Part shown: positions 4,959 through 58,125 of the stretch, piece after piece | How the letters are laid out: each line of letters begins with the position of its first letter | Position numbering within the stretch: the first letter of the stretch is position 1 | Source: Macrostomum lignano | Taxonomy: Eukaryota | DNA: 64,000 nucleotides | Direction of reading: 5' to 3' | Assembly (NCBI GenBank): GCA_002269645.1 | Contig: NIVC01002632.1 | Location: 1 to 64,000, forward strand | Made by a program: the position numbers and the translations under genes | Notes under the pieces: model-generated | The model's input: the letters and a program-made list of their open reading frames with translations, nothing else | Database searches by the model: none | Told to the model about the DNA's origin: nothing

Positions 4959-6021
4959 ATGGAGTCTGCTTTTTTAGTTCGCAGCAATTTCACTTCCACC
5001 GAAATTCAAAACGAGCCAATTCCGGACCGCTTTAAGTGCAGCGGCTGCTCAGAGCTGCTCGTCAACTGCTACCAGACTCCGCACGGATGCCGCCTGTGCC
5101 AGCGGTGCTTCAGCACCGAGCTGCTGCAATCCAGCGATCGAGTCTGTCCCTGCATTCATTCGCTAGACAGCTGCAGAGACCGTGCGAGACTTGTTGAGCA
5201 CTTCGTGAGTCAGGCCGACTGCTTCCCCGACATTGCAACACGAAAGGACGTGCTCGAACTTGAAGTCCGATGCTCGAACGAAGAGTCCGGCTGTGAGAAG
5301 CAGCTCACCTTGAGGCAGCTGGACTCTCATCTGACCGACGAGTGCCAGTTCGAGATCGTCACGTGCGACCGCTGCTCGGAGCGAGTCCGTCAGTTCGAGA
5401 TGAACGGCTGCCACACGGATCTGCGGTCTCCTCACTGCTGCTCCGAGTTCCGAGCTCCGTGTCCTCACTGCAGCGACTCGAGCAGCAGGCTGGACCGCTC
5501 GGAGTTCCAGGAGCACCTGATGACGTGTCCGGAGAGACCGAGCGACTGCAAGTACCGACAGAGCATCGGGTGTCAGACGAACATGGCAATGTCGCAGCTG
5601 GATGAGCACTACTGCTCGGGTACCGACGGGCACCTCGAGCTCACGGTGCAGCGCTTCCAACAGGAGCTGCAGCAAAAGGACTCCGAACTAAAAGAAATGA
5701 ATAATTCGGTCGGGCAACTGCAGGAAAAAGTCCTGAAGCTAACCGAACGTTTATTCCTATTTGAAAAGTCTCCTCTACTAAAAACACTGCTCAACCAAGG
5801 GGTAAATAATGCTTTAAATTGTAATGTTTCTCTGCAGTACAACCCATTGATGTGCCGAATTCACTGCCCCTGATCATTCGCAATTTTAGAGACGACTGAG
5901 CAACGGCGATTTAACAGAGCAGCCCGGTGAAGAAGACAATCAGAGCCAGCAGAATACCGCGATCAAAGAATCGATTACTTTCGAACAGATGAGGCGAAGG
6001 ATGTCTGCTTTTGAAGTTTGA
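4959..6021 (+). CDS. TRAF-like protein 1 (variant RING, zf-TRAF repeats, coiled coil, no MATH domain); exons 4959-5801 and 5890-6021
   Basis: CxxC..QTPHGCRLCQRC RING-like motif; FPDIATRKDVLELEVRCSNEESGC is typical of TRAFs. Phase-0 intron GGG|GTAAAT...TTTTAG|AGA (88 bp); short exon 2 ends in TGA. Confidence 0.8.
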
Positions 6022-11472: not shown

Positions 11473-12562
11473 ATGGAGCAAGCTTTAGTGCGAAGCGATT
11501 TATCTTCTATCAAAATTCGAAACAAGCCGATACCGAACCATTTAATGTGCAGCGGCTGCTCAGAGCTGCTCATAAATTCCTACCAGACTCCGCACGGATG
11601 CCGCCTGTGCCAGCGGTGCTTCAGCACCGAGCTGCTGCAATCCAGCGATCGAGTCTGTCCCTGCATTCATTCGCTGGACAGCTGCAGAGACCGTGCGAGA
11701 CTTGTTGAGCACTTTGTGAGTCAGGCTGTCTGCTTCCCCGACACTGCAACACGTAAGGACGTGCTCGAACTTGAAGTCCGATGCCCGAACGAAGAGTCCG
11801 GCTGTGAGAAGCAGCTCACCTTGAAGCAGCTGGACTCTCATCTGACCAACGAGTGCCAGTTCGAGATCGTCACGTGCGACCGCTGCTCGGAGCGAGTCCG
11901 TCAGTTCGAGCTGAACGGCTGCCACACGGATCTGCGGTCTCCTCACTGCTGCTCCGAGTTCCGAGCTCCGTGTCCTCACTGCAGCGACTCGAGCAGCAGG
12001 CTGTACCGCTCGGAGTTCGAGGAGCACCTGATGACCTGTCCGGAGAGACCGAGCGACTGCAAGTACCGACAGAGCATCGGGTGTCAGACGAACGTGGCAA
12101 TGTCGCAGCTCGATGAGCACTACTGCTCGGGTACCGATGGCCACCTGGAGCTCACGGTGCAGCGCTTCCAACAGGAGCTGCAGCGAAAGGACTCCGAACT
12201 AAAAGAAATCAATAATTTGTTGATGAAGCTCAAGACCAGAGATAAACAGAGGGCCATTGAAGTCGGACAACTGAAGGAAAAAGTCCTGAAGCTAACCGAA
12301 CGTTTATCCACCTTTGAAAAGTCTCCTCTACTAAAAACACTGCTCAATCAAGGGGTAAATAAGGCTTTAAATTGTAATGTTTCTCAGCATTAAAACCCAT
12401 CGATGTGCCGAATTCACTGCCCCTGTTTATCCGCAATTTCAGAGACGACTGAGCAACGGCGATTTAACAGAGCAGCCCGTTGAAGAAGACAATCAGAGCC
12501 AGCAGGATGCCGCCGTCAAGGAATTGAACAGGATGGGTCGAAGGAGATCTGTTGTTTTTTGA
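11473..12562 (+). CDS. TRAF-like protein 2 (paralog of 4959-6021; no MATH domain); exons 11473-12354 and 12443-12562
   Basis: Same RING/zf-TRAF motifs; same phase-0 intron GGG|GTAAAT...TTTCAG|AGA; exon 2 RRLSNGDLTEQP..RRRSVVF-stop. Confidence 0.8.
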
Positions 12563-15867: not shown

Positions 15868-16640
15868 GTTTCAGGGCCTGGGCGCGAACGTAGGCCGCAC
15901 CGCCGGCATCAGCCAGCAGGCAGTCGACGAAACGCCGAGTGCGGGCCTGCCCCCGCCGGTAGGGTTCCTGCAGCGTGAGCAAAAGCACTTTCTGCACCGG
16001 CTGTGGGCAGTACGACTCGTCTCAGATGATATGGCCTTGCCAGCTGGAGTCGCCGATGGCGCAACATTTCGCTGGGACGGGACAGGCCGGTGTGGCGATA
16101 GAGTGCCGCATTGGTGACTCGCTCGTAGCCGATCTTGAAGGCGGCGCACAGCAGGCCAGCGTGCGCCGCATCGACCTGCTGTTCGAGTGAATCAGTCAGG
16201 GTCCAGGTCTCGGCGTTGTACAACAGTACGGTTTCGATCACCGCCTGGAACAACGCCGCCCTCTGGCGGTCAGGCAGGGCCTCGGACTGCTGGACAGCCC
16301 TCACGGAACGGAAGGCAGCACAGGCAAATCCATAGCAAAGTCGCAGGTCCTCACGAACGTCAGGCACCAGACCGCCGAGATAGACGAACTGCTGACATCG
16401 CGGAAGCCTCGTCACCTGCGCGTCTGCGCCTCGGCAGAAAATTTCAGCCTCATGTCGTCCGGTACGCAGAGCACAACGGTCTTCTGCGTGTTGACCACCA
16501 GGCCGACGCTCGCCGCAACGCTTACCAGCCGGTCCAGCTGGCGCTGGGCGCCCTCGACGGTGGAGGAAAGGAGGGCGAGATCGTCGGCGTAGCCAAGCAC
16601 GCTGAGCCGCGCAAGCGACAGTAACGGCGCAAGCGATCTC
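15868..16640 (-). mobile_element. 5'-truncated RTE-type LINE fragment, copy 2
   Basis: SVLGYADDLALL, FVYLGG, LLYNAETWTLT and RRLQLA motifs; frameshifts present. Confidence 0.8.
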
Positions 16641-17077
16641 CCTTTAGAGTGAGATAAACGAATGAGAAAGGTCAATCGCGACTCAACCTAGCCTAGGGTT
16701 TGGGGTGGGATCGACATTGCAGTACAATTAAGCAGGGGTGGCTAGGCGGAGACCTAAACTAGGTGGCGCATTCACCACACTTACCGGAGGTTGTCGTGCG
16801 ATTCACAACCATTAGGGCCAACTCCAAGGCGCAGAGAGTGTACATGCCTGACCGATAAACAGTTAGGGCCTCTGTACACCCTGAGGCGCTGACAGACTAG
16901 CTCGAACAAGACGTTGACGGCCGTCGCACGCTGGCCAGATCGACAACGTAAACGTCGGCGACGAGTGAGTCACCAACGCGTCACTGTATCCCTGCGCCGG
17001 TGTGTCCCGTCCACATCATCCGCGCCGAGTCACACAGATTATTATGTACAAAACTTAAATCTCGTTTTTTTTTTTTT

Positions 17078-18242
17078 TTAGTTTCCGCCAGGCACAGCCA
17101 ATTCCGCGTTGGTCTCTTCCGTCAAACTCTCCGACGCGGTTCTCTTGCGGCTGGGCAGCCAATTGGTCGAAAATGGGCTCGATTGCACCCGTCGATGACA
17201 ACCTTTCGACGGTAAAGCTGCAACCGATGCTGGAGTCGAAGATTCGCGTCCGAGTTCCGAGACGTTGTTGGCAGAGACGCGATTGGTAATTGTCTCCAGA
17301 GACCTTCGCAACTCAGGCTTGGTTGCTGAGACCGAAGCTTCGGATTTGGCCTGCAATAAAGGAGCGCTGCTACATGCATATCAACTCAAAGTGGCTAATT
17401 CAGTTTTAGATCTTAATCACAATGACAGTGTTTACTATACGAACCTGTTTGGCTTCGATGAGCTTGATCCTAGCTTTTAGATCACCATTTTCCTTCTCCA
17501 AGCGTGTTATTTTTGCAGCATCACTGCACTTGGACGCCTGCAATTCTTTGACTATGTTGCTCATCATAAGCAAGTGCTCATTAGTGTTTTGGCTGTAATG
17601 CTCAGTCAGCTGCCTCTGCTTTGACCTCGCTCGACAGCCAAACTCGGCGAACGGACATTTCACAGGAATCTCAGAGCAAGTCTTTGCATGCTCAATAAAG
17701 TCCACACGGTTTAGCATGTCACTGCCGTAGCCGAAGAAGCCGCAGTAGCCGCAGTGGCAGCGGAAGTGTACACAGCAGTCGGCAGACTCCAGATTGCAGT
17801 GAACAAGGTGCAGCTTGTACACAATGATTTCCCTGAGACAAAATTGGCACGCGACGGTCTCGTACTCGCATTTCTGCTTCAAGTGCTCCTCTAGCATCTT
17901 CCACTGCATCTGCTCAGAGCATCCGAGGTCAGCATTCGGACAGAAGACCCACAACTCGGACAGCTCCCGTCGGGTGGCCAAGTCCGGCAGGCATCGGTCA
18001 CGGCAAACCCAACGCTGTCGTTCGCCATCGACATTGCTGTCGTTGTCCTGGTCTGTTGTTCCCGGACAGGGCCCGCAGTGTGTCGGATGCAAGCTGTTTA
18101 CGCACACCTGGCACAGTCTGAATCCTTGCGGCGTCTGGAAGCAGTTGACCAACAGTCCTTTGCAGGCTTTGCAGACAAAATAATTGGGGACTGCTGATTG
18201 AGACACAGGCTTGGCACGCAGGGCTCTTTCTGATAGCTCCAT
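17078..18242 (-). CDS. TRAF-like protein 3 (degenerate RING, zf-TRAF, coiled coil, Ser/Thr-rich tail, no MATH); exons 18242-17445 and 17350-17078
   Basis: PDLATRRELSELWVFCPNADLGC and CPFAEFGC..EH TRAF motifs; phase-0 intron CAG|GTTCGT...TTGCAG|GCC (94 bp). Confidence 0.8.
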
Positions 18243-19765
18243 TGATCTGGATTTAGCTGTACGAGTATAAAGAATTGTAAGAAAAACGTAGGCGCTTTAT
18301 TTCATTTAAAAAATATTGGCGCTTTGGTCATAGTACACGGATGAAGGAATGTGAGTTTAGTTTAACAAATTCTGAAGGTATTTCCAAGGCAATTCCGTGG
18401 GTTAGCAGAATACACTGGCCAGTGTACAATAGCATAGTGTACGCACAGTAGTAGAGGTTAAACTACCCCCTGCCCAGAAGTACGTATTCGAAGCATGGAA
18501 TACGGTGCGAGAACATTCAACTTGTCGCTTTACCCTCGATTAATAGTAAGCTAAGCTGCATGACCGACTTTGCGGGCGAAATCTAGAGTAAACAGTACGC
18601 GCACCTATCTGGCTTGTCAGGACTAATGCAAAATAAACGGCAAATCCGCGGAAAAGCCGCGGAAATTTCGCGGTAGAAAAACCTTTCGGTTGAAGGCTAT
18701 GAGTGGAAGCATAGCATAGTTTTAGGTCTTTCCTAATAATACTTAGGAAAATTAGGCTTCGTAAAATTTCTAGTCAGCACGATATGATAAAAGAGATGCA
18801 AATTTAGTCTGAAGATGGGAGAGAGCGGCAGTTTCGCTGTCGGATCGTAAAAATAGACCGACTTGCAATTGAGTGTAGAATTTTCTAAAATAATAGTTTA
18901 TTTTGTCATGAAAAGATCGGTATAAAGTGGCTCTAAAATTAGTTAGAAAAGCGCGAATCATAACTTAGGCATCTAGTAATCAAATATGTAGAACTTTTGC
19001 TAAGTAAAATCTGGAAATAGGATATCTTACGATAACAAGAGGAAACATGATTCGATTGTTGAAAAAACATTCGGACGGAGTGCACTCGTCCTTTGTCCCT
19101 TAAATATAAAATCTTGGTTGCTAGAATAACACTAGAGATAGAAGACAAACTTTGATGCGCTAGAAAACGATGAAAATGGAAAAAATCTTTGTGCTCTGGG
19201 TCGATATATTTACGAGTTCTGACTGTAAGTGTACAATACTCGTTCATGAACAATTAAATGAAAAAATCTATAATCCACACAAACGAAAGATAAACACTCG
19301 TACAAAAGTTGGGCGGTCGAAATTTGGCAATGTACGTACATATTCGAACAAATATGCTATATGTTAAACTGATCGTATAACTATTGCAGACCCCAGATGT
19401 AAAAGAACAAAAAACAGTGGCAGCTCCAAAACAAGGCTTGATTTTAATATTCAAAAAAATTCTTATTTGCTGAAAAGCGCGTCGGGTGTCATGAAACTCA
19501 TTAAAAAGTTCTTAACAAAGAAATATGCTAGCAGAACTTCACTTTGTAACGTTTTTACTTCCACCAGCAAACTTCGACAAGAAAGCTTCAGAGTAAATTT
19601 CACAGTCACTTAAAAGTCAGTCGATTTAAGCTGGCAATATAAACGGACAAGACCAGTCGATATTTCAATGCGAGACGGCCGTTAAAATGTTTTGCATAGG
19701 CGTGATCGACTGATCCGTTTTGATGACCAACTTTGTTATATTTTCCTCAGTGATGTATGCCTGAT

Positions 19766-20830
19766 TTATTTCATTACTGCTCTGTACGTTACTGTGGCTG
19801 TGGCATACGTTACTGTGGCATAGTGAGAAGCTTTGGCAGACTCCAGGCTTTGGGACGTACCGGTAGGTGAAAAGAAGGACTGTCTCAAGCGCTTGATTTT
19901 AGGGATCAAATAAAGAGCGGTTGAAGAAGGACGAGCTACAGGCTCTAGATTAGCACCGGAAGTACTGCTAAATGGCCAAATTGAACATACGGCAATGCTG
20001 CATCCCAGAAAGAGTATGGCCAATGCGACCAATAGAAACAGTGCTAGATACCATATGGTAGTTTTCTGGGCTTGGCTTTTACATTTAAGCTTCTGATTCT
20101 CCTTCTCCAAGCGATCCATTCTCCAGCGCTGGGCGCTGATGCAACAGCCAATCATAAGCAAGTGTTCGTTGTTACATTGGCTGAAATGCTCAGTCAGCTG
20201 CCTCTGCTTTGGCTTCACTTGACAGCCAAACTCGGCGAACGGACATTTCACAGGGATCTCAGAGCAAGTCTTTGCATGCTTAATAAAGTCCACACGGTTT
20301 AGCATGTCACTGCCGTAGCCGAAGAAGCCGCAGTAGCCGCAGTGGCAGCGAAAGTGCACACAGCAGTCGGCAGACTCCAGATTGCAGTGAACAAGGTGCA
20401 GCTTGTACACAATGATTTCCCTGAGACAAAATTGGCACGTGACGGTCTCGTACTCGCATTTCTGCTTCAAGTGCTCCTCTAGCATCTTCCACTGCATCTG
20501 CTCAGAGCATCCGAGGTCAGCATTCGGACAGAAGACCCACAACTCGGACAGCTCCCGTCGGGTGGCCAAGTCCGGCAAGCATCGGTCACGACAAACCCAA
20601 CGCTGACGTTCGCCATCGACATTACTGTCGTTGTCCTGGTCTGTTGTTCCCGGACAGGGCCCGCAGTGTGTCGGATGCAAGCTGTTTACGCACACCTGGC
20701 ACAGTCTGAATCCTTGCGGCGTCTGGAAGCAGTTGACCAACAGTCCTTTGCAGGCTTTGCAGACAAAATAATTGGGGACTGCTGATGGAGACACAGGCTT
20801 GGCACACAGGGCTCTGTCTGATAGCTCCAT
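19766..20830 (-). CDS. TRAF-like protein 4 with predicted C-proximal transmembrane helix, no MATH domain
   Basis: N-terminal ~225 aa nearly identical to the 18242 gene, followed by IWYLALFLLVALAILFLGCSIAVCSIWPF in one uninterrupted 354-aa frame. Splicing of the extreme 3' end is uncertain. Confidence 0.75.
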   Translation of the reverse strand: MELSDRALCAKPVSPSAVPNYFVCKACKGLLVNCFQTPQGFRLCQVCVNSLHPTHCGPCPGTTDQDNDSNVDGERQRWVCRDRCLPDLATRRELSELWVFCPNADLGCSEQMQWKMLEEHLKQKCEYETVTCQFCLREIIVYKLHLVHCNLESADCCVHFRCHCGYCGFFGYGSDMLNRVDFIKHAKTCSEIPVKCPFAEFGCQVKPKQRQLTEHFSQCNNEHLLMIGCCISAQRWRMDRLEKENQKLKCKSQAQKTTIWYLALFLLVALAILFLGCSIAVCSIWPFSSTSGANLEPVARPSSTALYLIPKIKRLRQSFFSPTGTSQSLESAKASHYATVTYATATVTYRAVMK

Positions 20831-21237
20831 TGATCTGGAGTAGGTGGGAAGGTAAGCAGCTAAAGATTTAAGCTGGAATTATATTAACGGAAGCGTTAAA
20901 ATGTGTCTATCGAATCTATGCTTAGTCTATATGTTCCGATCAAAAACACTCAATCCCTGTGTGCAGAGGTACTCTTTACAACAGAACAACTTTATGAAAG
21001 TACGCATACTTTCAGCTTACAAAACTCACTTTTCCCAAGAATTAAAATAATTAAGTTTTCAAAGTTTGATAGCAAATAGCAAACATATCATTTTTGTATT
21101 TAATAAAATGCTGGACAATGCAGTGTCTATTTAATTTACTAATTAAACAAGTAGTTCAGTATACTCGTAGAGCATGTAATTTTGCCGCGTAAAGTAAATG
21201 CACAAATTTTGACAGCTACGGTTTCTTATCCTCAGCC

Positions 21238-25480
<4,243 letters not shown>

Positions 25481-26826: not shown

Positions 26827-29633
26827 TCACCGAACAATTTTAGCCCGGTTCATCCGCCTCTCCTGCTTCTTCTGTTTTTTAGCATCCGCTTCGGTCTCCT
26901 CGGGTGCCGGAGCAAAGAACCATGGGCCAAGGATGTTCACCCAGAGCAGGTAGAACAGGCGGATGGGGACAGCGATGAGCAGGCAGAAGCAGTAAGTGTG
27001 CAGTTGGGCCAGGACCAAGGTGCCCGCAGTCCACAGAAGAACATCCTGCCGGCGATAGGTTGCAGATATAGGATAGTATTATATCTTTTATTATTTATTA
27101 TTTAGTTTTAAATTATATATCTCCGCTTCAAAAAAAGATCTTACCCAATCCTGTCTATGATTTCACTTTTTCGATTAAGAGAACTCATCCATTCTACTAG
27201 AGATCTCACTCATTCTACTAGAGATCTCACCCATTCTACTAGAGAGTTCACCTATTCTACTAGAGAGTTCACTCATTCTACTAGAGAGTTCACCCATTCT
27301 ACTAGAGATCTCACCCATTCTACTAGAGATCTCACCCATTCTACTAGAGATCTCACCCATTCTACTAGAGATCTCACCCATTCTACTAGAGATCTCACCC
27401 ATTCTACTAGAGATCTCACCCATTCTACTAGAGATCTCACTCATTCTACCTGAGATCTCACCCATTCTACTAGAGATCTCACCCATTCTAATAGAGATCT
27501 CCCCCGTTCTACAAAGAGATCTCACCCATTCTATTAGAGATCTCACCCATTCTACTAGAGATCTCACCCATTCTACAAAGAGATCTCACTCATTCTACTA
27601 GAGATCTCACCCATTCTACTAGAGAGTTCACCTATTCTATTAGAGATCTCACCCATTATACTTGAGATCTCACCCATTCTACTAGAGATCTCACCCATTC
27701 TAATAGAGATCTCACCCGTTCTATTAAAGATCTCACCCATTCTACAAAGAGATCTCACCCATTCTATTAGAGATCTCACTCATTCTACTAGAGATCTCAC
27801 CCATTCTACAAAGAGATCGCACCCATTCTACAAAGAGATCTTATTCATTCTACTTGAGATCTCACCCATTCTATTAGAGATCTCACCCATTCTACAAAGA
27901 GATCTCACCCATTCTATTAGAGATCTCACTCATTCTACTAGAGATCTCACCCATTCTACAAAGAGATCGCACCCATTCTACAAAGAGATCTTATTCATTC
28001 TACTTGAGATCTCACCCCTTCTATTAGAGATCTCACCCATTCTACAAAGAGATCTCACCAATTCTACGAAGAGATCTCACCCATTCTACTAGAGATCTCA
28101 CTCATTCTACTTGAGATCTCACCCATTCTACTAGACATCTCACCCATTCTATTAGAGATCTCACCCATTCTACAAAAGAGATCGCACCCATTCTACAAAG
28201 AGATCTTATTCATTCTACTTGAGATCTCACACATTCTATTAGAGATCTCACCCATTCTACAAAGAGATCTCACCAATTCTACGAAGAGATCTCACCCATT
28301 CTACTAGAGAGTTCACCTATTCTACTAGAGAGTTCACTCATTCTACTAGAGAGTTCACCCATTCTACTAGAGATCTCACCCATTCTACTGGAGATCTTAC
28401 CCATTCTACTAGAGATCTCACCCATTCTACTAGAGATATCACCCATTCTACAAAGAGATCTCACTCATTCTACTAGAGATCTCACTCATTCTACTAGAGA
28501 TCTCACCCATTCTACAAAGAGATCTCACTCATTCTACTAGAGATCTCACTCATTCTACTAGAGATCTCACCCATTCTACTAGAGAGTTCACCTATTCTAT
28601 TAGAGATCTCACCCATTCTAATAGAGATCTCACCCGTTCTATTAAAGATCTCACCCATTCTACAAAGAGATCTCACCCATTCTATTAGAGATCTCACCCA
28701 TTCTACTAGAGATCTCACCCATTCTACAAAGAGATCTCACTCATTCTACTAGAGATCTCACTCATTCTACTAGAGATCTCACCCATTCTACTAGAGAGTT
28801 CACCTATTCTATTAGAGATCTCACCCATTCTACTTGAGATCTCACCCATTCTACTAGAGATCTCACCCATTCTACTTGAGATCTCACCCATTCTACTAGA
28901 CATCTCACCCATTCTATTAGAGATCTCACCCATTCTACAAAGAGATCGCACCCATTCTACAAAGAGATCTTATTCATTCTACTTGAGATCTCACACATTC
29001 TATTAGAGATCTCACCCATTCTACAAAGAGATCTCACCAATTCTACGATGAGATCTCACCCATTCTACTAGAGAGTTCACCTATTCTACTAGAGAGTTCA
29101 CTCATTCTACTAGAGAGTTCACCCATTCTACTAGAGATCTCACCCATTCTACAAAGAGATCTCACCCATTCTACTAGAGAACTCAACCATTCTACTGGAG
29201 ATCTCACCCATTCTACTAGAGAACTCAACCATTCTACTGGAGATCTCACCCATTCTACTGGAGATCTTACCCATTCTACTAGAGATCTCAGCCATTCTAC
29301 TAGAAAATAACAAATTACCTTAAAGTGCTCAGCCATGCCGTGCTCCATATTTAAATCCTGACCGGCATCAACCAGCTGCCCAGTAGGGGAATAAGTGGCC
29401 GCTGACATGCTAGACATCACTTTGTACATTCCGCCTAGTAGAGCTTCGCACACGATAATAAGCGCCAAATGCCAATTAGATATTGAAGACCAAAATAACA
29501 GAGTGCAAGGCAAAGCGAACGCATTGACGCCGAGGATAATGCGTTGATAGAGCTGCAAAGTTGACGCGTTCTCTTCCGTGATTTGTTTCTGGCCTCGGGT
29601 GGCCGTTTTGCCCGGCTTGGTTGTTGCTTTCAT
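26827..29633 (-). CDS. TMEM208: Transmembrane protein 208 (SND2 family); exons 29633-29319 and 27045-26827 (~177 aa)
   Basis: TRGQKQITEEN, GQLVDAGQDLNMEHGMAEHFK|DVLL, LLWVNILGPWF and basic tail KKQERR; phase-0 intron AAG|GTAATT...GGCAG|GAT. Confidence 0.92.
27185..29303. repeat. 21-bp minisatellite (AGAGATCTCACCCATTCTACT), about 100 units, filling the TMEM208 intron
   Basis: Continuous periodicity with recurrent variant blocks. Confidence 0.95.
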
Positions 29634-30139: not shown

Positions 30140-32040
30140 GGACACTGATAAACACCCCAGCTTTATCTAATAAGACACTGATAAACACCCCAGCTTTATC
30201 CAATAAGACACTGATAAACACCCAAGCTTTACCCAATTAGACACTGAAAACACCCCAGCTTTATCTAATAAGACACTGATAAACACCCCAGCTTTATCTA
30301 ATAAGACACTGATAAACACCCAGCTTTATCTAATAAGACACTGATAAACACCCCAGCTTTATCCAATAAGACACTGATAAACACCCCAGCTTTATCTAAT
30401 AAGACACTGATAAACACCCCAGCTTTATCCAATAAGACACTGATAAACACCCAAGCTTTACCCAATTAGACACTGAAAACACCCCAGCTTTATCTAATAA
30501 GACACTGATAAACACCCCAGCTTTATCTAATAAGACACTGATAAACACCCCAGCTTTATCCAATAAGACACTGATAAACACCCCAGCTTTATCTAATAAG
30601 ACACTGATAAACACCCCAGCTTTATCTAATAAGACACTGATAAACACCCCAGCTTTATCTAATAAGACACTGATAAACACCCCAGCTTTATCTAATAAGA
30701 CACTGATAAACACCCCAGCTTTATCTAATAAGACACTGATAAACACCCCAGCTTTATCCAATAAGACACTGATAAACACCCCAGCTTTATCTAATAAGAC
30801 ACTGATAAACACCCCAGCTTTATCTAATAAGACACTGATAAACACCCCAGCTTTATCTAAAGACACTGATAAACACCCCAGCTTTATCCAACAAGACACT
30901 GATAAACACCCCAGCTTTATCCAATTAGACACTGATAAACACCCCAGCTTTATCCAATAAGACACTGATAAACACCCCAGCTTTATCCAATAAGACACTG
31001 ATAAACACCCAAGCTTTACCCAATTAGACACTGAAAACACCCCAGCTTTATCTAATAAGACACTGATAAACACCCCAGCTTTATCTAATAAGACACTGAT
31101 AAACACCCCAGCTTTATCTAATAAGACACTGATAAACACCCCAGCTTTATCCAATAAGACACTGATAAACATCCCAGCTTTATCTAATAAGACACTGATA
31201 AACACCCCAGCTTTATCTAATAAGACACTGATAAACACCCCAGCTTTATCTAATAAGACACTGATAAACACCCCAGCTTTATCCAATAAGACACTGATAA
31301 ACACCCCAGCTTTATCTAATAAGACACTGATAAACACCCCAGCTTTATCTAATAAGACACTGATAAACACCCCAGCTTTATCCAAAAAGACACTGATAAA
31401 CACCCCAGCTTTATCCAACAAGACACTGATAAACACCCCAGCTTTATCCAATTAGACACTGATAAACACCCCAGCTTTATCCAATAAGACACTGATAAAC
31501 ACCCCAGCTTTATCCAATAAGACACTGATAAACACCCCAGCTTTATCTAATAAGACACTGATAAACACCCCAGCTTTATCCAATAAGACACTGATAAACA
31601 CCCCAGCTTTATCTAATAAGACACTGATAAACACCCCAGCTTTATCTAATAAGACACTGATAAACACCCCAGCTTTATCCAAAAAGACACTGATAAACAC
31701 CCCAGCTTTATCCAACAAGACACTGATAAACACCCCAGCTTTATCCAATTAGACACTGATAAACACCCCAGCTTTATCCAATAAGACACTGATAAACACC
31801 CCAGCTTTATCCAATAAGACACTGATAAACACCCCAGCTTTATCTAATAAGACACTGATAAACACCCCAGCTTTATCCAATAAGACACTGATAAACACCC
31901 CAGCTTTATCTAATAAGACACTGATAAACACCCCAACTTTATTTAATAAGACACTAATAAACACCCAGATTTATTCAATAAGACGCTATAAACACCCAGA
32001 TTTATCTAATAAGACTGATAAACATCCAGCTTTATCCAAC
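30140..32040. repeat. 33-bp minisatellite (AAGACACTGATAAACACCCCAGCTTTATCTAAT), about 57 units
   Basis: Continuous periodicity; the (LLDKAGVFISV)n ORFs are its translation. Confidence 0.95.
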
Positions 32041-45936: not shown

Positions 45937-48327
45937 TCACTTTTTGAAATAACTGGCGATGGTAGACTTGGTTGCCTTCTCCTCCAACTTTCTCTTTTTC
46001 TCTTTGAGGCCCTCAGTCTCCTTCTCCAGTGTCTTGCGCTCAATCGCTAGGGCAGCTACCTGTCGCTGATATTCGTCAAGCATTGCGGCAGCTCTGTCCG
46101 CTTGCGCATCTACCTCCAGTCTCCTCTTCCGTATGCTCTCCTCCTTTGCCTGCAACTGTGCAGAGTGTGTTGCCTTCTTAATTTCCTGTGCAATTTCTAC
46201 TGCCAATTCTCTCTCCTTTGCCAACTTCTTCTGCTTCTCCTCATTCTCCTCCCGCTGCCGCTCCAGGTGCTGCTTCCAGCTGTGCCGAGCATGAAAGCCT
46301 GCGTTGATGTACGCGTCATTGAAGTGAAACATTTCACAAGTCAAACCGGTCGACTTCAGGAAACCTCGGGTAAGCAGACAGCCATCTATGGTGCGGATGT
46401 CCAGATTGCTTCTTTTCTTTGAAAAAAGGTCTGTAAGATCGGCAAACACACGCTCCACTGCCGCATTGCCATGCGGGATGGAAAGAGCGGCAAGCACCAA
46501 TTTGCGCAGTGCAGGGTATTCGTACACACTACCTTCCTCCGCAGTACCAACACCACTCAGTGTAGCATTTACGACTGGAAGCCAGAAATCAAGTACCTCA
46601 ACGTCCTGCAGCTTATCACAGTCTTTCGAACACAGTGCCAATGAAAGTCGCCGAAAGTCAGTGTCAATGGTCGAAATGTCTTGCTCCGAGAAATGCATTT
46701 CTTTAGCCAATCCAACCGGGTACGAGCTGTCAACCAACGAAACCTTCGATGGGTCAAGAAATTGTGCGCACCTCAAAGCAGCATTTGCCAGTGGGAGATG
46801 GGATTGGAGGTATTGTGTCAGCTCGTTGTAGAACTGTCTCGCGCGCACGATACAGACCTTCTTGACATCAGCACTCTCACGAGTCGAAAGAAAGTTGCGC
46901 GCCTTCTCGCCAATGAAGACTTGATTGTCTGGTAAGCATGCTTCAAATGGGAACTTCATTCTAGATAAATGCTTGGCATTAGAAGCCACGTGCTCCTTTG
47001 TTAAGAAGCAGGCCAGTAGTTCCTTGAACAACATACGGAGCTCAATGTACATCAAATGGATCTTGACGTTGTTACCTTGGAATGCTTTCTCAAACTTGTC
47101 CAACATTGGCAGCACAGCCTGGAGGAAAAGAAGATCGAATTCAACTTCATCATCAGCTAGGAGTGACTGGATAGACTGGACCGATTCTTTTTTCAAATCA
47201 TTGGGATTTTCCAGGCGCAGCCTCTTTAGAAAAAACTCACGGAGTCCTTCCAACTGCTCAACAAGCCTGTTAACCACCGGCAAAAGCTGTATCCACCTAG
47301 TTTCAACACGTCGCAAAAACCTGTGCGACTGCAATTCAAGCATGTCTTGCACATGCTCGTACCTAGTCCAGCGAGATGTGTACAGAAAGTACGAGTGAAC
47401 AAGATCAGCCAGGTTTTCGGCTTTTTTCCCGAGCTTGTCACATGCAGCCCGCGCGGCATTCGAAACATGGTGGAGTGAGCACGTGGCCATTTTGAGTAGA
47501 TGGGGTGCATGTTTGTCCATGAGGGTGTGGAACCCACCATGCCGCCCTGTCATCACCGATGGGCCATCAGACATAACACAGACGCACGATTTGAACCGAA
47601 GGCCTAATTCGTTGCAGGTGTTCGCGACGGCAGCTTCCAGAGTTGCGGCTCGCCCATCAGGAATGCTCACAGTCTTGAGAGGCAGTATGAGAAGTTTCTT
47701 CTTCGTGATGGAAATGAATGACACTACAATACTTAAAAACTTCTGCGAGCCCATCGCCTGGTTAGATTCGTCTATGGCTAGGCTAAAATAGCCGCTTCCA
47801 GAGTTAATGTCTTGTATAATTTCATTCCGAATGGTTGGAGCGATTGCCTCTGTTACCAAGTAGGTGGTCTTCTGCCGCTGGCATTTGAATTTTTGGGCAA
47901 TTTGGCTGTCCGGAAACATGGTCTTGTATATTCCGTGGTCAGCAGAGGCGAATGACCGATGGTGCTCCACAATATTCAGAGCGTGCCTCAGCTCGGCCTT
48001 CATGACTTTGGCATCTAAAGTGCTTGGCTTTTCAGTTGTGGTATCGCCATTTGTGCCATCAGCACTAGGATTGGAGGTTGACGACCTCTGGGGCTTGAAA
48101 TAAAAATTGATGGACGTCGCCGAGCTTTCCTTTTGGAGCTTGAGCATATAGCGATCAGAATGCTTCTTGCTCTTCGCATGATTTTCTACCGCTCCAAAGC
48201 CAGCTGAGCCGATTTGGAAATCTTTGGCACAAATTGAGCAGTAGGCCCGACAAGCGTCTTTTGGGTCAGGCTGGAGCCAGAGGCTGCACTGCTGGTTATG
48301 GGCCGTTCGGTTGCACCAGGAGTCCAA
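45937..48327 (-). CDS. hAT transposase (BED-like zinc finger, DDE core, dimerisation region, C-terminal coiled coil); 5' start uncertain (the track uses a TTG)
   Basis: YCSIC..HAKSKKH, SLAIDES, MSDG, CSLHH, VETRW and SIPHGNAAVERVF motifs in a 796-codon frame with no stops. Confidence 0.88.
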   Translation of the reverse strand: MDSWCNRTAHNQQCSLWLQPDPKDACRAYCSICAKDFQIGSAGFGAVENHAKSKKHSDRYMLKLQKESSATSINFYFKPQRSSTSNPSADGTNGDTTTEKPSTLDAKVMKAELRHALNIVEHHRSFASADHGIYKTMFPDSQIAQKFKCQRQKTTYLVTEAIAPTIRNEIIQDINSGSGYFSLAIDESNQAMGSQKFLSIVVSFISITKKKLLILPLKTVSIPDGRAATLEAAVANTCNELGLRFKSCVCVMSDGPSVMTGRHGGFHTLMDKHAPHLLKMATCSLHHVSNAARAACDKLGKKAENLADLVHSYFLYTSRWTRYEHVQDMLELQSHRFLRRVETRWIQLLPVVNRLVEQLEGLREFFLKRLRLENPNDLKKESVQSIQSLLADDEVEFDLLFLQAVLPMLDKFEKAFQGNNVKIHLMYIELRMLFKELLACFLTKEHVASNAKHLSRMKFPFEACLPDNQVFIGEKARNFLSTRESADVKKVCIVRARQFYNELTQYLQSHLPLANAALRCAQFLDPSKVSLVDSSYPVGLAKEMHFSEQDISTIDTDFRRLSLALCSKDCDKLQDVEVLDFWLPVVNATLSGVGTAEEGSVYEYPALRKLVLAALSIPHGNAAVERVFADLTDLFSKKRSNLDIRTIDGCLLTRGFLKSTGLTCEMFHFNDAYINAGFHARHSWKQHLERQREENEEKQKKLAKERELAVEIAQEIKKATHSAQLQAKEESIRKRRLEVDAQADRAAAMLDEYQRQVAALAIERKTLEKETEGLKEKKRKLEEKATKSTIASYFKK

Positions 48328-51300
48328 ACTTTGTGGCTCGAACTTTCGATAGCGACATGAATGATGAAGGGCAGTTGAAGCTCGCTGAAATGGACATATT
48401 ACAATTGTTGCGTTACCAAATTAATTTAATTGAGCTTATGAAGTTGGCTGCTAAAATGGTCTTCGAGGTTGTGAATATTCGAGCCTATGAAGTTTCGGAT
48501 TTATGAAAGGATGTGCTTTTCGAGGTTGTGAAATTTCGAGCTTGTGAAGCGACCCCAAATGCAGGAAGTAGTTTTCTTTGTATTTTTCAAACAATGGATT
48601 TTAAGATAAACAAAGCTGATGCAACAAACATAAAACGTGGGATTTTAGATAATACAACAGCAAAAAGGACCACTTAAGTCACCAACAAAACAGCTAGCAA
48701 GTAAAAACGCAGAATGAAAAAAAACGCAGAAAAAAATGCACAAACGCAGATTTTTCAAAGAAAAAACGCAGCTGCGTTAAAAACGCAGCCTGTAGCAACA
48801 CTGGTGGCCGGCCTGCCACCATGGTTAACAGGTCAAACATCGAGCTTGTGTGTTGTGCTCTGGATGTTGACCGCCGAGCTACAGTGCGAGAGTTGTCAAC
48901 CATTACTGGCATCTCATCAATGGCCATTCATTCAATCCTGACAGTTGAGCTTGGTATGTCATGCATTATTGCTTGTTGGGTCCCAAAACTTCTGATTGAC
49001 CAGCAGCAGCGAGAGCAGGTCCAGGTGTGTTGGCAGCTCCTCCAGTCATATTGCAGTGATCCCAACTTTTTGGACCGGATTGTGACTGGGGATGAATCCT
49101 GGTTTCATTATAGTGAGCCAGAGTCCAAGATGCAGAGCAGTGTATGGAAGGCCAGCCATAAGCCCACACCTGTCAAGGCCCTGACTGCACCTTCAGCTGG
49201 CAAGCAAATGGCCACCATCTTCTGGGACAATGAGGGTATTCTGCTCATCGAATGGCTACCTTGTGGTGCCACAATAAACAGTGAGTACTACATCCAAGTC
49301 CTGCAGAAGTTGCGTGAAGCCATCAAGGCCTAGCAGCGTGGCAAGCTAAGCCGTCGCATCCTGATTCAGCACGACAATGCCAGGCCACATACCAGCCAGG
49401 CAACAATGGCTGCCATTTCGGACCTGGGCTTCGAGGTGCTGCCACACCTGCCTTACTTGCTGGACCTTGCACCTAGTGACTTCTGGCTGTTTGGAAAGAT
49501 GAAAAAACCTTCCGAGGTTGCTAGTACAGCTCTCTACAGACCCTGGCATTGGCCATCAGCCAGTGGGTCAGGGGGTCACTTGCCAATTTCTATGCTGCTG
49601 GCATCGAGAAATTGCCTGAGAGGTGGCACAAGTGCATAAGCCTCAAGGGTGCCTACGTTGAGAAGCAAGAAGAGTAGCACTACATTTGTTCAATCTGTTA
49701 AACTGTTAGACACATTTGATTGCGGACTTTCTGAACAACCTTTGTATGTTAAAAAGATTAATAAATCAAAATAGGCTAACTAAGTTTATAATTTTTATTT
49801 GTCAAGTGGCTTAGCGTATTTTAGCTATTGATTTTATTACTTGAATAAATGATTGAATTATTGCAAACTAGGATCAGGATCCAGATAATCAAGGGATTTT
49901 TAATCTAGGATAAGTGGGATCCTAGCATTTAGAATCATAGGATTTAGGCATTTATTGAAAGATCCTAGGATTATACTCCTAGCCCCACACTCAGGAAGGT
50001 GTATATTATAGCAGAAAATTCTGGCGCACATCAACAAAAATGTGCGCAAAGTAGAAGTTTTTAGCACACAGTAGCGCATAGCAAAAGTAGATAAAAAATT
50101 TAGCTTATAATGAGTCACCTAATTTGCATATGCAATACATGAAATATGCTTTTAGATTGTTTTTTAAGCATATTAATTAAAAATTTGTTTCTTGGTAAGT
50201 GAAACAAATAATCAAAATTCAAAATAGGATTTTACTCTAAAGTTTAAGCTAATTCTATGTGAGCTAAAATAAAGCACAAAGTTTTGAGTTAAAAAAAGCC
50301 TATGGAAACTTTGGAAAGTACAAAAATTTATCTGTTTTTTTATTTAATTGTTTTAATCGGACTTTTACCAAGTTTTTTTGTTATTGCACATTAGTGCTCT
50401 AGCTAGGCCCTATGTATTTGTCAATAAACAAATGAAGGCCTCGGCGCACAAGTTCATATTTTAGCTTTGCGCACAGCACACACTCCAAAAATACACTGAG
50501 ATATATTCTCGCACACACGTGACACCTTCCTGACTGTGGTCCCAGCCTAGCCTTACCTCTCCTTTTCCTCTTTTATTTTTTCTTTCTTTCTTATTCTTCA
50601 TTTTTTCTTAATTTGGTCTATATAGCTATCTATCTATACTTATACTTTATAGTCATACTTGATTTTCTATCCTATCCTATAGGCCCTACCTATAACATAA
50701 GTATAACCTATGCCTTGTTTGTTGTGCTAACCTTCATAGCCATAGCCCCCTAAAAGTAAAAGATAAATAGGCCTAGGCCTAGCTACTATAAAACTTATAG
50801 AGCTAGTGGCATAAAATATATAGGCCGGCGCACCATATAGTCAGATAGGCCTAACTAACAAAATGAATCTTTAACCACCATAGGGTGGGGCCTACATTAC
50901 ATACTAATGACATGCACAAGAAAGATTAAGTTTGTGTACAACATAAAGAAGAAATCATGTCATGTGAGAATGGATAATAGGCCCTGCATGGCCTAAAGCT
51001 TAGCCTACTAAGCCACTAAGGAAACAAAAAACAGCAACAACGAGGTTGCCAACTACTATTGGCATTGGCGATTGGCTACACTAGGCCTACACTACACTAC
51101 TTTCACTTTCACTTTCACTTCAGTCAGACTCAGGTCAAGGACGAGTATTATAAAATAATATTCTGATAGTAGTAAACCCTATTCCTGGCAATTTTTCAAT
51201 TGTCAATGTAGTAACGTGTGTCTTTATACGTTGACGTACGTACAACAACAAATATGACCCGCCAGCCAGCGCTGCTGCGGATTACTGATCAACTTAACTT

Positions 51301-57261: not shown

Positions 57262-58125
57262 ATGGCAAGCTGGTTCTCAAAAAGTCCCGAGAAGTTGGTG
57301 CAATCAGCGAACAAGCTGAAGCAGCAGCAACAATGGCTCCAAGCCGGCGACGAGTTTTGTGAAGCAGCGGTGCTTTATAAAAGCAAGGACGAGGTGGAGG
57401 TCGCCAACTGTCTGCGCGACGCTGCCAACTGCTACATTAAGGTCGACGAAAGATACGCCATCATGGCTATGGAAGCCGCAGCCATCATCGAGTCGGAGCA
57501 GGGCAAGTTCCAATATTCGGCCGAGCTGCACAAGAATATTGCTGAGCTTGCGTTGTCTCTGGATCGCAAGAAGCCTCGCATCGACAACTGGCTGAGCATC
57601 GGAGGAGCTCTGGATATGAAGAGTAAGAGTCGGTTTGGACAGTTTGGTCAGTCCTCTAGATCAATGTCTGCCACCAGACTGGCTGTCCAACACTTGGAAA
57701 AGGCTGCCACCTACTTCAACAGCGAAGGAGGTCCGGCCAACGAGGCCGACTGTTTCGCCCAGATGGCCGAACTGTTGGCCGACTCTGGTGACCTGGTAGA
57801 AGCGGCCGAGATCTACGACAAGCTTGTTGAGCTGGCTTGGAAGCACGAGTTTCTCGCCCTCGGTGCCAAGACCTACGCGTTTCGCGCCTGCCTGTGCCGA
57901 CTTGCGGCCGGCCTCGAGCTCCGCATGGACGAGATGGAGAAGCGGTGCCCTTCGCTGACCGGCTCCGATGAGTGCACTCTGGTAAAGAGTCTGGACGAGG
58001 CCTGCGACTCTGCCACTGTCGATGCGGCGATCCGACAGTTCGGCAGACTCAACCAGGCGGACGAGTGGACCAAGAGGAGGCTGGATGCAGTGCGTGGAAA
58101 ACGAGCCGGACCCAGACTAGCTTAG
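57262..58125 (+). CDS. Divergent alpha-SNAP (NSF attachment protein) paralog, single coding exon, 287 aa
   Basis: Aligns by eye to alpha-SNAP: AGDEFCEAA, ANCLRDAANCYIK, AELHKNIAE, AKTYAFRACLC, SDECTLVKSL, DEWT. 5' UTR intron 57161-57259. Confidence 0.85.
   Translation: MASWFSKSPEKLVQSANKLKQQQQWLQAGDEFCEAAVLYKSKDEVEVANCLRDAANCYIKVDERYAIMAMEAAAIIESEQGKFQYSAELHKNIAELALSLDRKKPRIDNWLSIGGALDMKSKSRFGQFGQSSRSMSATRLAVQHLEKAATYFNSEGGPANEADCFAQMAELLADSGDLVEAAEIYDKLVELAWKHEFLALGAKTYAFRACLCRLAAGLELRMDEMEKRCPSLTGSDECTLVKSLDEACDSATVDAAIRQFGRLNQADEWTKRRLDAVRGKRAGPRLA

Follow-up and report, generated by a model that had tools for sequence, protein, structure and literature searches.

TRAF adaptors are normally soluble proteins that make contact with membranes only via receptors, and the locus described here raises the question of whether one member of the family has acquired a membrane anchor of its own. 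The gene concerned, here called B, lies at positions 19766–20830 (minus strand) of the window analysed, i.e. bases 1–64000 of contig NIVC01002632.1 from the Mlig_3_7 assembly of the free-living flatworm Macrostomum lignano. A first-pass annotation of this DNA had described an open reading frame (ORF) in which a TRAF-type zinc-finger head is joined to a transmembrane (TM) helix. Exactly that ORF was found, a single-exon coding sequence (CDS) of 354 amino acids (aa) comprising a TRAF-like head, a candidate TM segment and a tail; the deposited model, P0001, begins at codon 3. B is a genuine, transcribed gene, specific to this lineage, and belongs to a tandem cluster of TRAF-like genes of M. lignano that lack MATH. 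The reading tentatively favoured here is that its product is a single-pass, membrane-tethered scaffold with a cytosolic N-terminus, a recent novelty of this lineage.

A TRAF6-like head in a cluster of MATH-less genes

Four MATH-less TRAF-like genes are present in the window (4959–5873, 11473–12562, 17078–18242 and 19766–20830), referred to below as D, C, A and B, respectively. In Pfam searches the head of B matched zf-TRAF with 30.7 bits (cut-off 27); a match to Sina_ZnF lay under its own cut-off. A profile built from the four window paralogs and compared with the PDB retrieved the RING-zinc finger region of TRAF6 (E=3.8e-11). An AlphaFold2 model was obtained from 39 relatives aligned with the four window paralogs (43 sequences); its mean predicted local distance difference test (pLDDT) score was 80.8, with values mostly >90 in the head and a dip to 60–72 at aa 61–80. 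Foldseek showed the best matches of this model to be the N-terminal domains of TRAF6, TRAF5 and TRAF2 (E=1.7e-9 for 3hcs). The fold and the order of modules were those of the TRAF6 N-terminal region (RING plus zinc fingers 1–3; 3hcs and 5vo0), with a target TM-score of 0.65–0.77. Pfam, the PDB profile match and the predicted fold therefore agree on the TRAF-like zinc-finger head that had been proposed. An exhaustive profile search gathered 2187 relatives. Among the 43 aligned sequences, 24 carry MATH and 23 match RING (zf-C3HC4), which indicates that the family is genuinely TRAF.

The RING of canonical TRAFs follows the pattern C-x2-C...C-x-H-x2-C-x2-C...C-x2-C/D, and their coiled coil (TRAF-N) drives trimerisation. 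The corresponding module of B (20645–20761, minus strand as for all features of B; aa 24–62) is degenerate, with Q39 and F41 at the C3 and H4 ligand positions. Where TRAF6 has PCGH and other M. lignano relatives have PHGC, this ligand pair reads PQGF in both A and B, neither of which was matched by any Pfam RING model. The RING claimed for B is thus not supported and, with these ligands apparently lost, activity of B as an E3 ligase is improbable. Both A and B also contain the sequence LHPTHCGPC, where relatives have LHPTERRLC; it places an extra His-Cys beside the conserved RING residue Cys59 (aa 52–59 of B, 20654–20677). This pair might compensate for the lost C3/H4 ligands, or be a coincidence.

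The TRAF-type zinc-finger array of B spans 20162–20539 (aa 98–223). The closest MATH-bearing relative, P0005 (PAA62526.1, BOX15_Mlig002242g1; RING-like, zf-TRAF, coiled coil and MATH), shows 38% identity in the head (E=2e-53) and shares an LHPT..CPGTT motif with B. P0005, however, keeps PHGC, has one zinc finger more than A and B, and carries MATH, whereas B ends in the TM segment. Judged as a canonical TRAF (TRAF1–6 type), B has the TRAF-type zinc fingers but neither an intact RING nor MATH/TRAF-C. It differs from TRAF6 in these respects, in its C-terminal TM segment and in its coiled coil, for which only ∼35 residues are available ahead of the TM segment, the helix being predicted by AlphaFold2 from aa 220 on.

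The TM segment had been said to stand in place of a MATH domain. Pfam detected no MATH in B, A, C or D, and a tblastn search of the whole 64-kb window with four MATH domains returned nothing below E=0.3. Since A, C and D are also MATH-less, the TM segment took the place of a short soluble tail, not of MATH: it arose in a subfamily that had already lost this domain.

Gene B and its neighbour A share a head and differ beyond it

Paralog A (P0002, BOX15_Mlig031668g5; 17078–18242, minus strand) encodes a soluble protein of 356 aa from exon 1 (17445–18242) and exon 2 (17078–17350), separated by a 94-nt intron (17351–17444). It lies 1.5 kb from B on the same strand and has the same degenerate RING. 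BLASTP of B against the ORF at 17406–18242 showed 86% identity across 258 aa (E=2e-172). As had been noted, the heads are nearly identical: 214 of the first 226 aa are shared (95%), with 96.5% DNA identity over 689 nt. This identity extends from the CAG acceptor directly ahead of ATCAATG to ...HLLM; the upstream flanks could not be aligned. Past HLLM, only an 18-nt patch encoding RLEKEN (17 of 18 nt identical) is clearly homologous. From there A splices, as had been described, into a hydrophilic exon 2 of 90 aa (GenBank protein P0002), while B, which has no annotated intron, reads through the TM segment into an unrelated tail; no significant similarity was found between the B tail and A exon 2. 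In the head core (aa 16–183), A and B differ by six synonymous changes and one non-synonymous change. The ratio of non-synonymous to synonymous differences (pN/pS) is 0.04, which argues that neither gene is freely decaying.

The two remaining paralogs lie on the plus strand. Paralog C (P0003, 333 aa; 11473–12562) has an exon 1 at 11473–12354, an 88-nt intron and an exon 2 at 12443–12562; the first exon ORF of paralog D (4959–5873) is ∼32% identical to B. Neither has a TM segment.

A strong candidate for a transmembrane segment

The zinc fingers of B are followed by a helical linker or short coiled coil (20057–20161; aa 224–258) that holds the RLEKEN patch and a basic flank, KLKCKSQAQK. Next comes the hydrophobic segment IWYLALFLLVALAILFLGCSIAVCSIWPF (19970–20056), put earlier at ∼28 aa and found to have 29 (aa 259–287), which is predicted to form a TM helix. 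Its best 19-residue Kyte-Doolittle mean is 2.89 (≤1.16 in the window paralogs), with a summed Hessa energy of –4.1 kcal/mol (aa 262–282). Of 230 non-genic stop-free stretches of at least 40 codons in the window, 7.8% reached a mean of 2.0 and only 0.4% reached 2.89. AlphaFold2 predicted a single continuous helix over aa 220–280, then a disordered tail. By its hydrophobicity, which exceeds TM thresholds over a stretch of ≥19 residues, the segment is a strong TM candidate.

The basic residues pointed out earlier are indeed found ahead of the segment: there are four Lys, and the net charge falls from +3 over the 15 residues on its N-terminal side to 0 over the 15 on its C-terminal side. B has a hydrophilic N-terminus and lacks an N-terminal signal peptide. 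The positive-inside rule, together with this absence, makes a cytosolic head the most likely topology, in line with the zinc fingers having been placed in the cytosol. A tail-anchored protein was considered and rejected, as 67 residues follow the segment and the limit is ∼30.

The deposited gene model reads through the segment

The GenBank annotation of Mlig_3_7 is transcript-based: it was derived from RNA-seq with StringTie and TACO (isoform-frac 0.75), gene boundaries being set by spliced leader (SL) and poly(A) reads and CDSs by TransDecoder (PMC5730564). For B, the deposited annotation holds only an unspliced CDS, on both contigs that carry the gene, and this CDS runs straight through the hydrophobic segment. 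The same annotation models the introns of A (94 nt) and C (88 nt). That B is unspliced while these introns are modelled favours read-through.

A Ser/Thr-rich tail with an unusually long open frame

The tail (19769–19969) had been described as ∼70 aa long and Ser/Thr-rich; it is 67 aa with 30% Ser/Thr, contains neither Cys nor a Pfam domain, and is predicted to be disordered (pLDDT <50). It includes an internal ATVTY/ATATVTY repeat and the peptides PSSTALYLIPK and QSFFSPTGTSQSLESAK. Past the point of recognisable homology, the frame of B remains open for 108 codons, with no stops compared to 3–9 in the other five frames. Only 0.35% of shuffled sequences did as well (p=0.003), and only 0.8% of local non-coding start points (p=0.008). 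In addition, an AATAAA polyadenylation-signal hexamer (19765–19770) overlaps the TAA stop codon (19766–19768), which was counted as evidence for a coding tail. A repeat or transposon origin of the tail and the DNA downstream was tried and rejected, the only match within the window being to itself.

A membrane-tethered scaffold as the favoured reading

B would start with a degenerate RING and four TRAF-type zinc fingers, after which a short helical stalk leads to a hydrophobic helix (aa 259–287) and a disordered tail of 67 aa. The hydrophobic helix would insert as a signal-anchor, leaving the head facing the cytosol and the tail facing the lumen or the outside. With a head 95% identical to that of A, B would be expected to bind the same partners, probably including A itself, and would hold them at the membrane as a tether, a scaffold or a sequestering decoy. 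Gene conversion, purifying selection or both may have preserved the similarity of A and B over their first 690 bp. The 3′ end of B would be new, taken from T-rich sequence where the paralogs carry an intron of ∼90 nt followed by a small 3′ exon. What the analysis shows directly is the ORF, its paralogy, the TRAF6-like head, the hydrophobicity, the lack of MATH and the unspliced form of the deposited model; that the protein enters a membrane, in which orientation, what it does there and how it arose are inferences. Of the interpretation given in the first-pass annotation, the TRAF-like head, the TM candidate, the cytosolic head and the read-through CDS were supported; the replacement of MATH, the RING and the receptor-adaptor fusion were not.

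Several observations weigh against this reading. The codon usage of the tail has no frame preference and is indistinguishable from that of non-coding DNA. A clear frame signal was present in the head and linker of B, and exon 2 of A, held out as a control, behaved like the tail; since this exon also gave no codon signal, the test lacks power and is uninformative. No ortholog and no second protein with the B tail was found among 5.8 billion clusters and 1.84 billion representatives, which leaves no comparison from which constraint on the TM segment and tail could be measured. A search with the tail as the only query also found nothing, although P0001 itself was not recovered, which makes its sensitivity doubtful. 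A second contig, NIVC01003055.1, is identical over 16.9–21.7 kb, intergenic DNA included, and so allows no test of selection. An exact look-up of the full-length 354-aa ORF in run assemblies gave none on record. The RING ligands, moreover, are gone from both A and B, so that any biochemical activity of the head is putative. Finally, the segment that encodes the putative TM helix sits where the paralogs keep their single intron of ∼90 nt, and it resembles an intron in ways set out below.

B as a possible neutral young duplicate

B might be a neutral young duplicate, transcribed in or behind the ANAPC2 unit, whose C-terminus is non-coding sequence that has come to be translated and serves no selected function. 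Its product would then be scarce or unstable, or the gene would be on its way to becoming a pseudogene. Consistent with this, B is restricted to one species and its tail has no homolog; the 3′ part of the gene is unrelated to A past RLEKEN, the tail has the codon usage of non-coding DNA, and the RING is already degenerate. In addition, M. lignano, a hidden polyploid, has undergone massive duplication (PMC5730564, PMC10468722), and thymine-rich non-genic sequence readily encodes TM segments (Vakirlis et al. 2020, PMC7005711). The TM segment of B is like such de novo segments in its T content (37%), in having no homolog and in its lack of a codon-usage signal, features to be anticipated in non-coding DNA of recent recruitment. 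Unlike the free-standing de novo TM ORFs of that study, however, it has been added to an old conserved domain in a tandemly duplicated gene. Neutrality is harder to reconcile with an open frame of 108 codons (p about 0.003–0.008), with TM quality in the top 0.4% of the non-genic null, with a polyadenylation signal placed exactly at the stop codon, and with the ratio of six synonymous differences to one non-synonymous difference in the head. This alternative is considered rather unlikely, though slightly more probable than any other rival to a membrane-tethered scaffold.

A possible retained or alternative intron

The segment might instead be the short intron of the family, removed wholly or in part, in which case the membrane form would be a minor isoform or an annotation artefact and the main product would be built like A and C. 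Both paralogs carry a single short intron past the coiled coil (94 nt in A, 88 nt in C) and, beyond it, a small hydrophilic exon. In B, a GT..AG-bounded candidate intron, in frame and stop-free, spans 19965–20051 (87 nt, or 84 nt with the AG ending at 19968). Its 3′ end reads TTTAG|CAG| (19968 or 19965), the acceptor TTTAGCAG including the CAG favoured in M. lignano. Its GT lies 44 nt past the RLEKEN patch, compared to 42 nt for the donor of A, and its T content (37%) is close to that of the A intron (34%) and above that of the exons (20–27%). The chance of such a segment being both a multiple of three and free of stops was estimated from composition at ∼0.09. Removal of 20051 to 19968/19965 would delete the TM segment and leave 325 or 326 aa, making up a soluble protein that retains the tail. 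A similar case may be provided by two relatives, P0135 and P0046, where the hydrophobic C-terminus looks as if the gene prediction had read through an intron.

Other evidence points away from splicing. The transcript-based annotation, which detects the introns of A and C, holds only the unspliced form of B. The weak donor TG|GTATCT noted earlier does exist (GT at 20051–20050); it has neither +4A nor +5G and, measured against the species motif GT[G/A]AG, is the weakest of the three paralogs, which fits poor splicing. The TM-coding segment aligned to the A intron no better than shuffled sequences did (global p=0.83, local p=0.43), and the stretch before the donor showed borderline similarity between B and A (p=0.058). 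The segment thus has the bounds, the length and the position of an exonised or retained intron, but not homology to the intron of A. Its hydrophobicity is extreme compared with that of translated non-coding DNA. The scenario envisaged earlier, in which the segment is spliced out to a downstream exon, stands in so far as an in-frame intron of 84/87 nt is possible; downstream of B, however, neither an exon like A exon 2 nor a MATH exon was found. Removal of the segment from the main product is judged unlikely.

A related proposal, somewhat more doubtful still, is that the TM helix was born from the family's conserved short intron: after the tandem duplication the donor would have weakened, and the in-frame, stop-free, T-rich intron would have turned coding. 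Retention or splicing of the 84/87 nt could then switch the product between a membrane-anchored and a soluble adaptor.

That B is a receptor-adaptor fusion, its tail acting as an extracellular sensing domain that signals independently of a separate receptor, is very improbable: only the predicted topology (head cytosolic, tail outside) speaks for it, whereas the tail is short (67 aa), disordered, devoid of Cys and of any Pfam domain, and resembles nothing in any database searched, and B, having no ectodomain, is unlikely to be a receptor at all.

The surrounding locus

The order of genes on the minus strand is TMEM208, ANAPC2, B and A. The ATG of B lies 407 nt past the stop codon of ANAPC2 on the same strand, inside the 1-kb distance applied to operons in M. 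lignano. The locus tag suffix 'g5' was considered as a sign of operon membership and set aside as not firm evidence, since g-numbers sharing one prefix can fall on different contigs; searches of literature and supplements gave no match for Mlig031668. A CTCCAG motif (20835–20840), directly 5′ of ATCAATG, fits the SL trans-splice acceptor motif of M. lignano, [T/C]TNCAG. The deposited CDS of B begins at codon 3, directly after ATGGAG| (20824–20840), and that of A begins 3 nt ahead of its ATG, directly after CAG| (18236–18251). The spliced leader of M. lignano terminates in ...TTGCATG (PMC8629364). Going by the CDS coordinates, the B mRNA may be trans-spliced at the second AG, the leader supplying an in-frame start codon (MLSDRAL...).

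Paralog A is not in the gene list of NIVC01002632.1, and the identical DNA on NIVC01003055.1 carries model P0002; this is probably an effect of an annotation filter or of multi-mapping. Directly after the stop codon of A there is an A15 run (17060–17080), then reverse-transcriptase-like ORFs (15900–16700; a long interspersed nuclear element fragment). The two contigs differ by one substitution and one indel exactly at the A stop codon and the A-run. Paralogs C and D, which share 32–34% identity with A and B, are part of a segmental duplication of several kb with ∼94–95% identity (∼14984–8425 versus ∼10384–5709).

Satellite arrays are present at 27178–29304, 30141–32036, 22553–23420 and 21686–21903 (21 bp ×100, 33 bp ×58, 22-bp arrays and (TCTG)54). 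Those at 27178–29304, 22553–23420 and 21686–21903 fall inside the TMEM208 and ANAPC2 gene spans, and the 33-bp array (30141–32036) just outside. The TMEM208 span differs between the two contigs (1.1 versus 2.8 kb), suggestive of an array-length polymorphism between haplotypes or homeologs. Further ORFs at 45937–48327, 48821–49333 and 57262–58125 comprise a 796-aa ORF with a weak match to a hAT dimerisation domain, a fragment of a mariner-type transposase and an alpha-SNAP gene.

Rarity of the architecture and its meaning

A TRAF-type zinc-finger head with its own membrane anchor is rare. Among the 148 other proteins listed in the 150 best matches, only P0137 (595 aa; an uncultured eukaryote, from metagenome contigs) has a credible C-terminal TM segment (best 19-residue Kyte-Doolittle mean 2.87). 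Like B it combines zf-TRAF with a C-terminal TM segment, showing that such TRAF-plus-anchor architectures occur. It is, however, a distant relative (E about 2.5e-12) with an intact RING and MATH, and its TM segment is at the extreme C-terminus, as in tail-anchored proteins. Another M. lignano protein, P0009 (UniRef100_A0A1I8HJH6; 520 aa, zf-TRAF plus MATH), bears the UniRef name 'TNFR-Cys domain-containing protein', possibly a false positive of a pattern on its Cys-rich fingers.

Outside the family, TRIM13/TRIM59 and ZFPL1 are membrane-anchored proteins with RING or variant-RING zinc fingers, ZFPL1 having a variant RING and a scaffold role (PMC4021871). They are like B in layout only: a cytosolic RING/zinc-finger module plus coiled coil at the N-terminus and a hydrophobic anchor at the C-terminus. 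The families are not homologous; B lacks a B-box, and TRAF-type zinc fingers are absent from TRIM13/TRIM59 and ZFPL1.

TRAF-family genes are expanded in free-living flatworms (PMC6109357). The architecture of B is unusual and lineage-restricted, with a segment that probably spans the membrane and a putative function there. Since B occurs in one species only and no constraint has been shown on its new part, its significance is modest. M. lignano is transgenic-competent (PMC5730564), so that the localisation and function of B are directly testable in this species. Were the TM helix to have arisen by exonisation of an intron, B would be a compact natural example of both localisation control and the birth of a TM domain by this route. 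More generally, if the favoured reading is true, B would offer a tractable example of a signalling adaptor re-localised via a TM segment that a young tandem duplicate gained from non-coding or intronic DNA.

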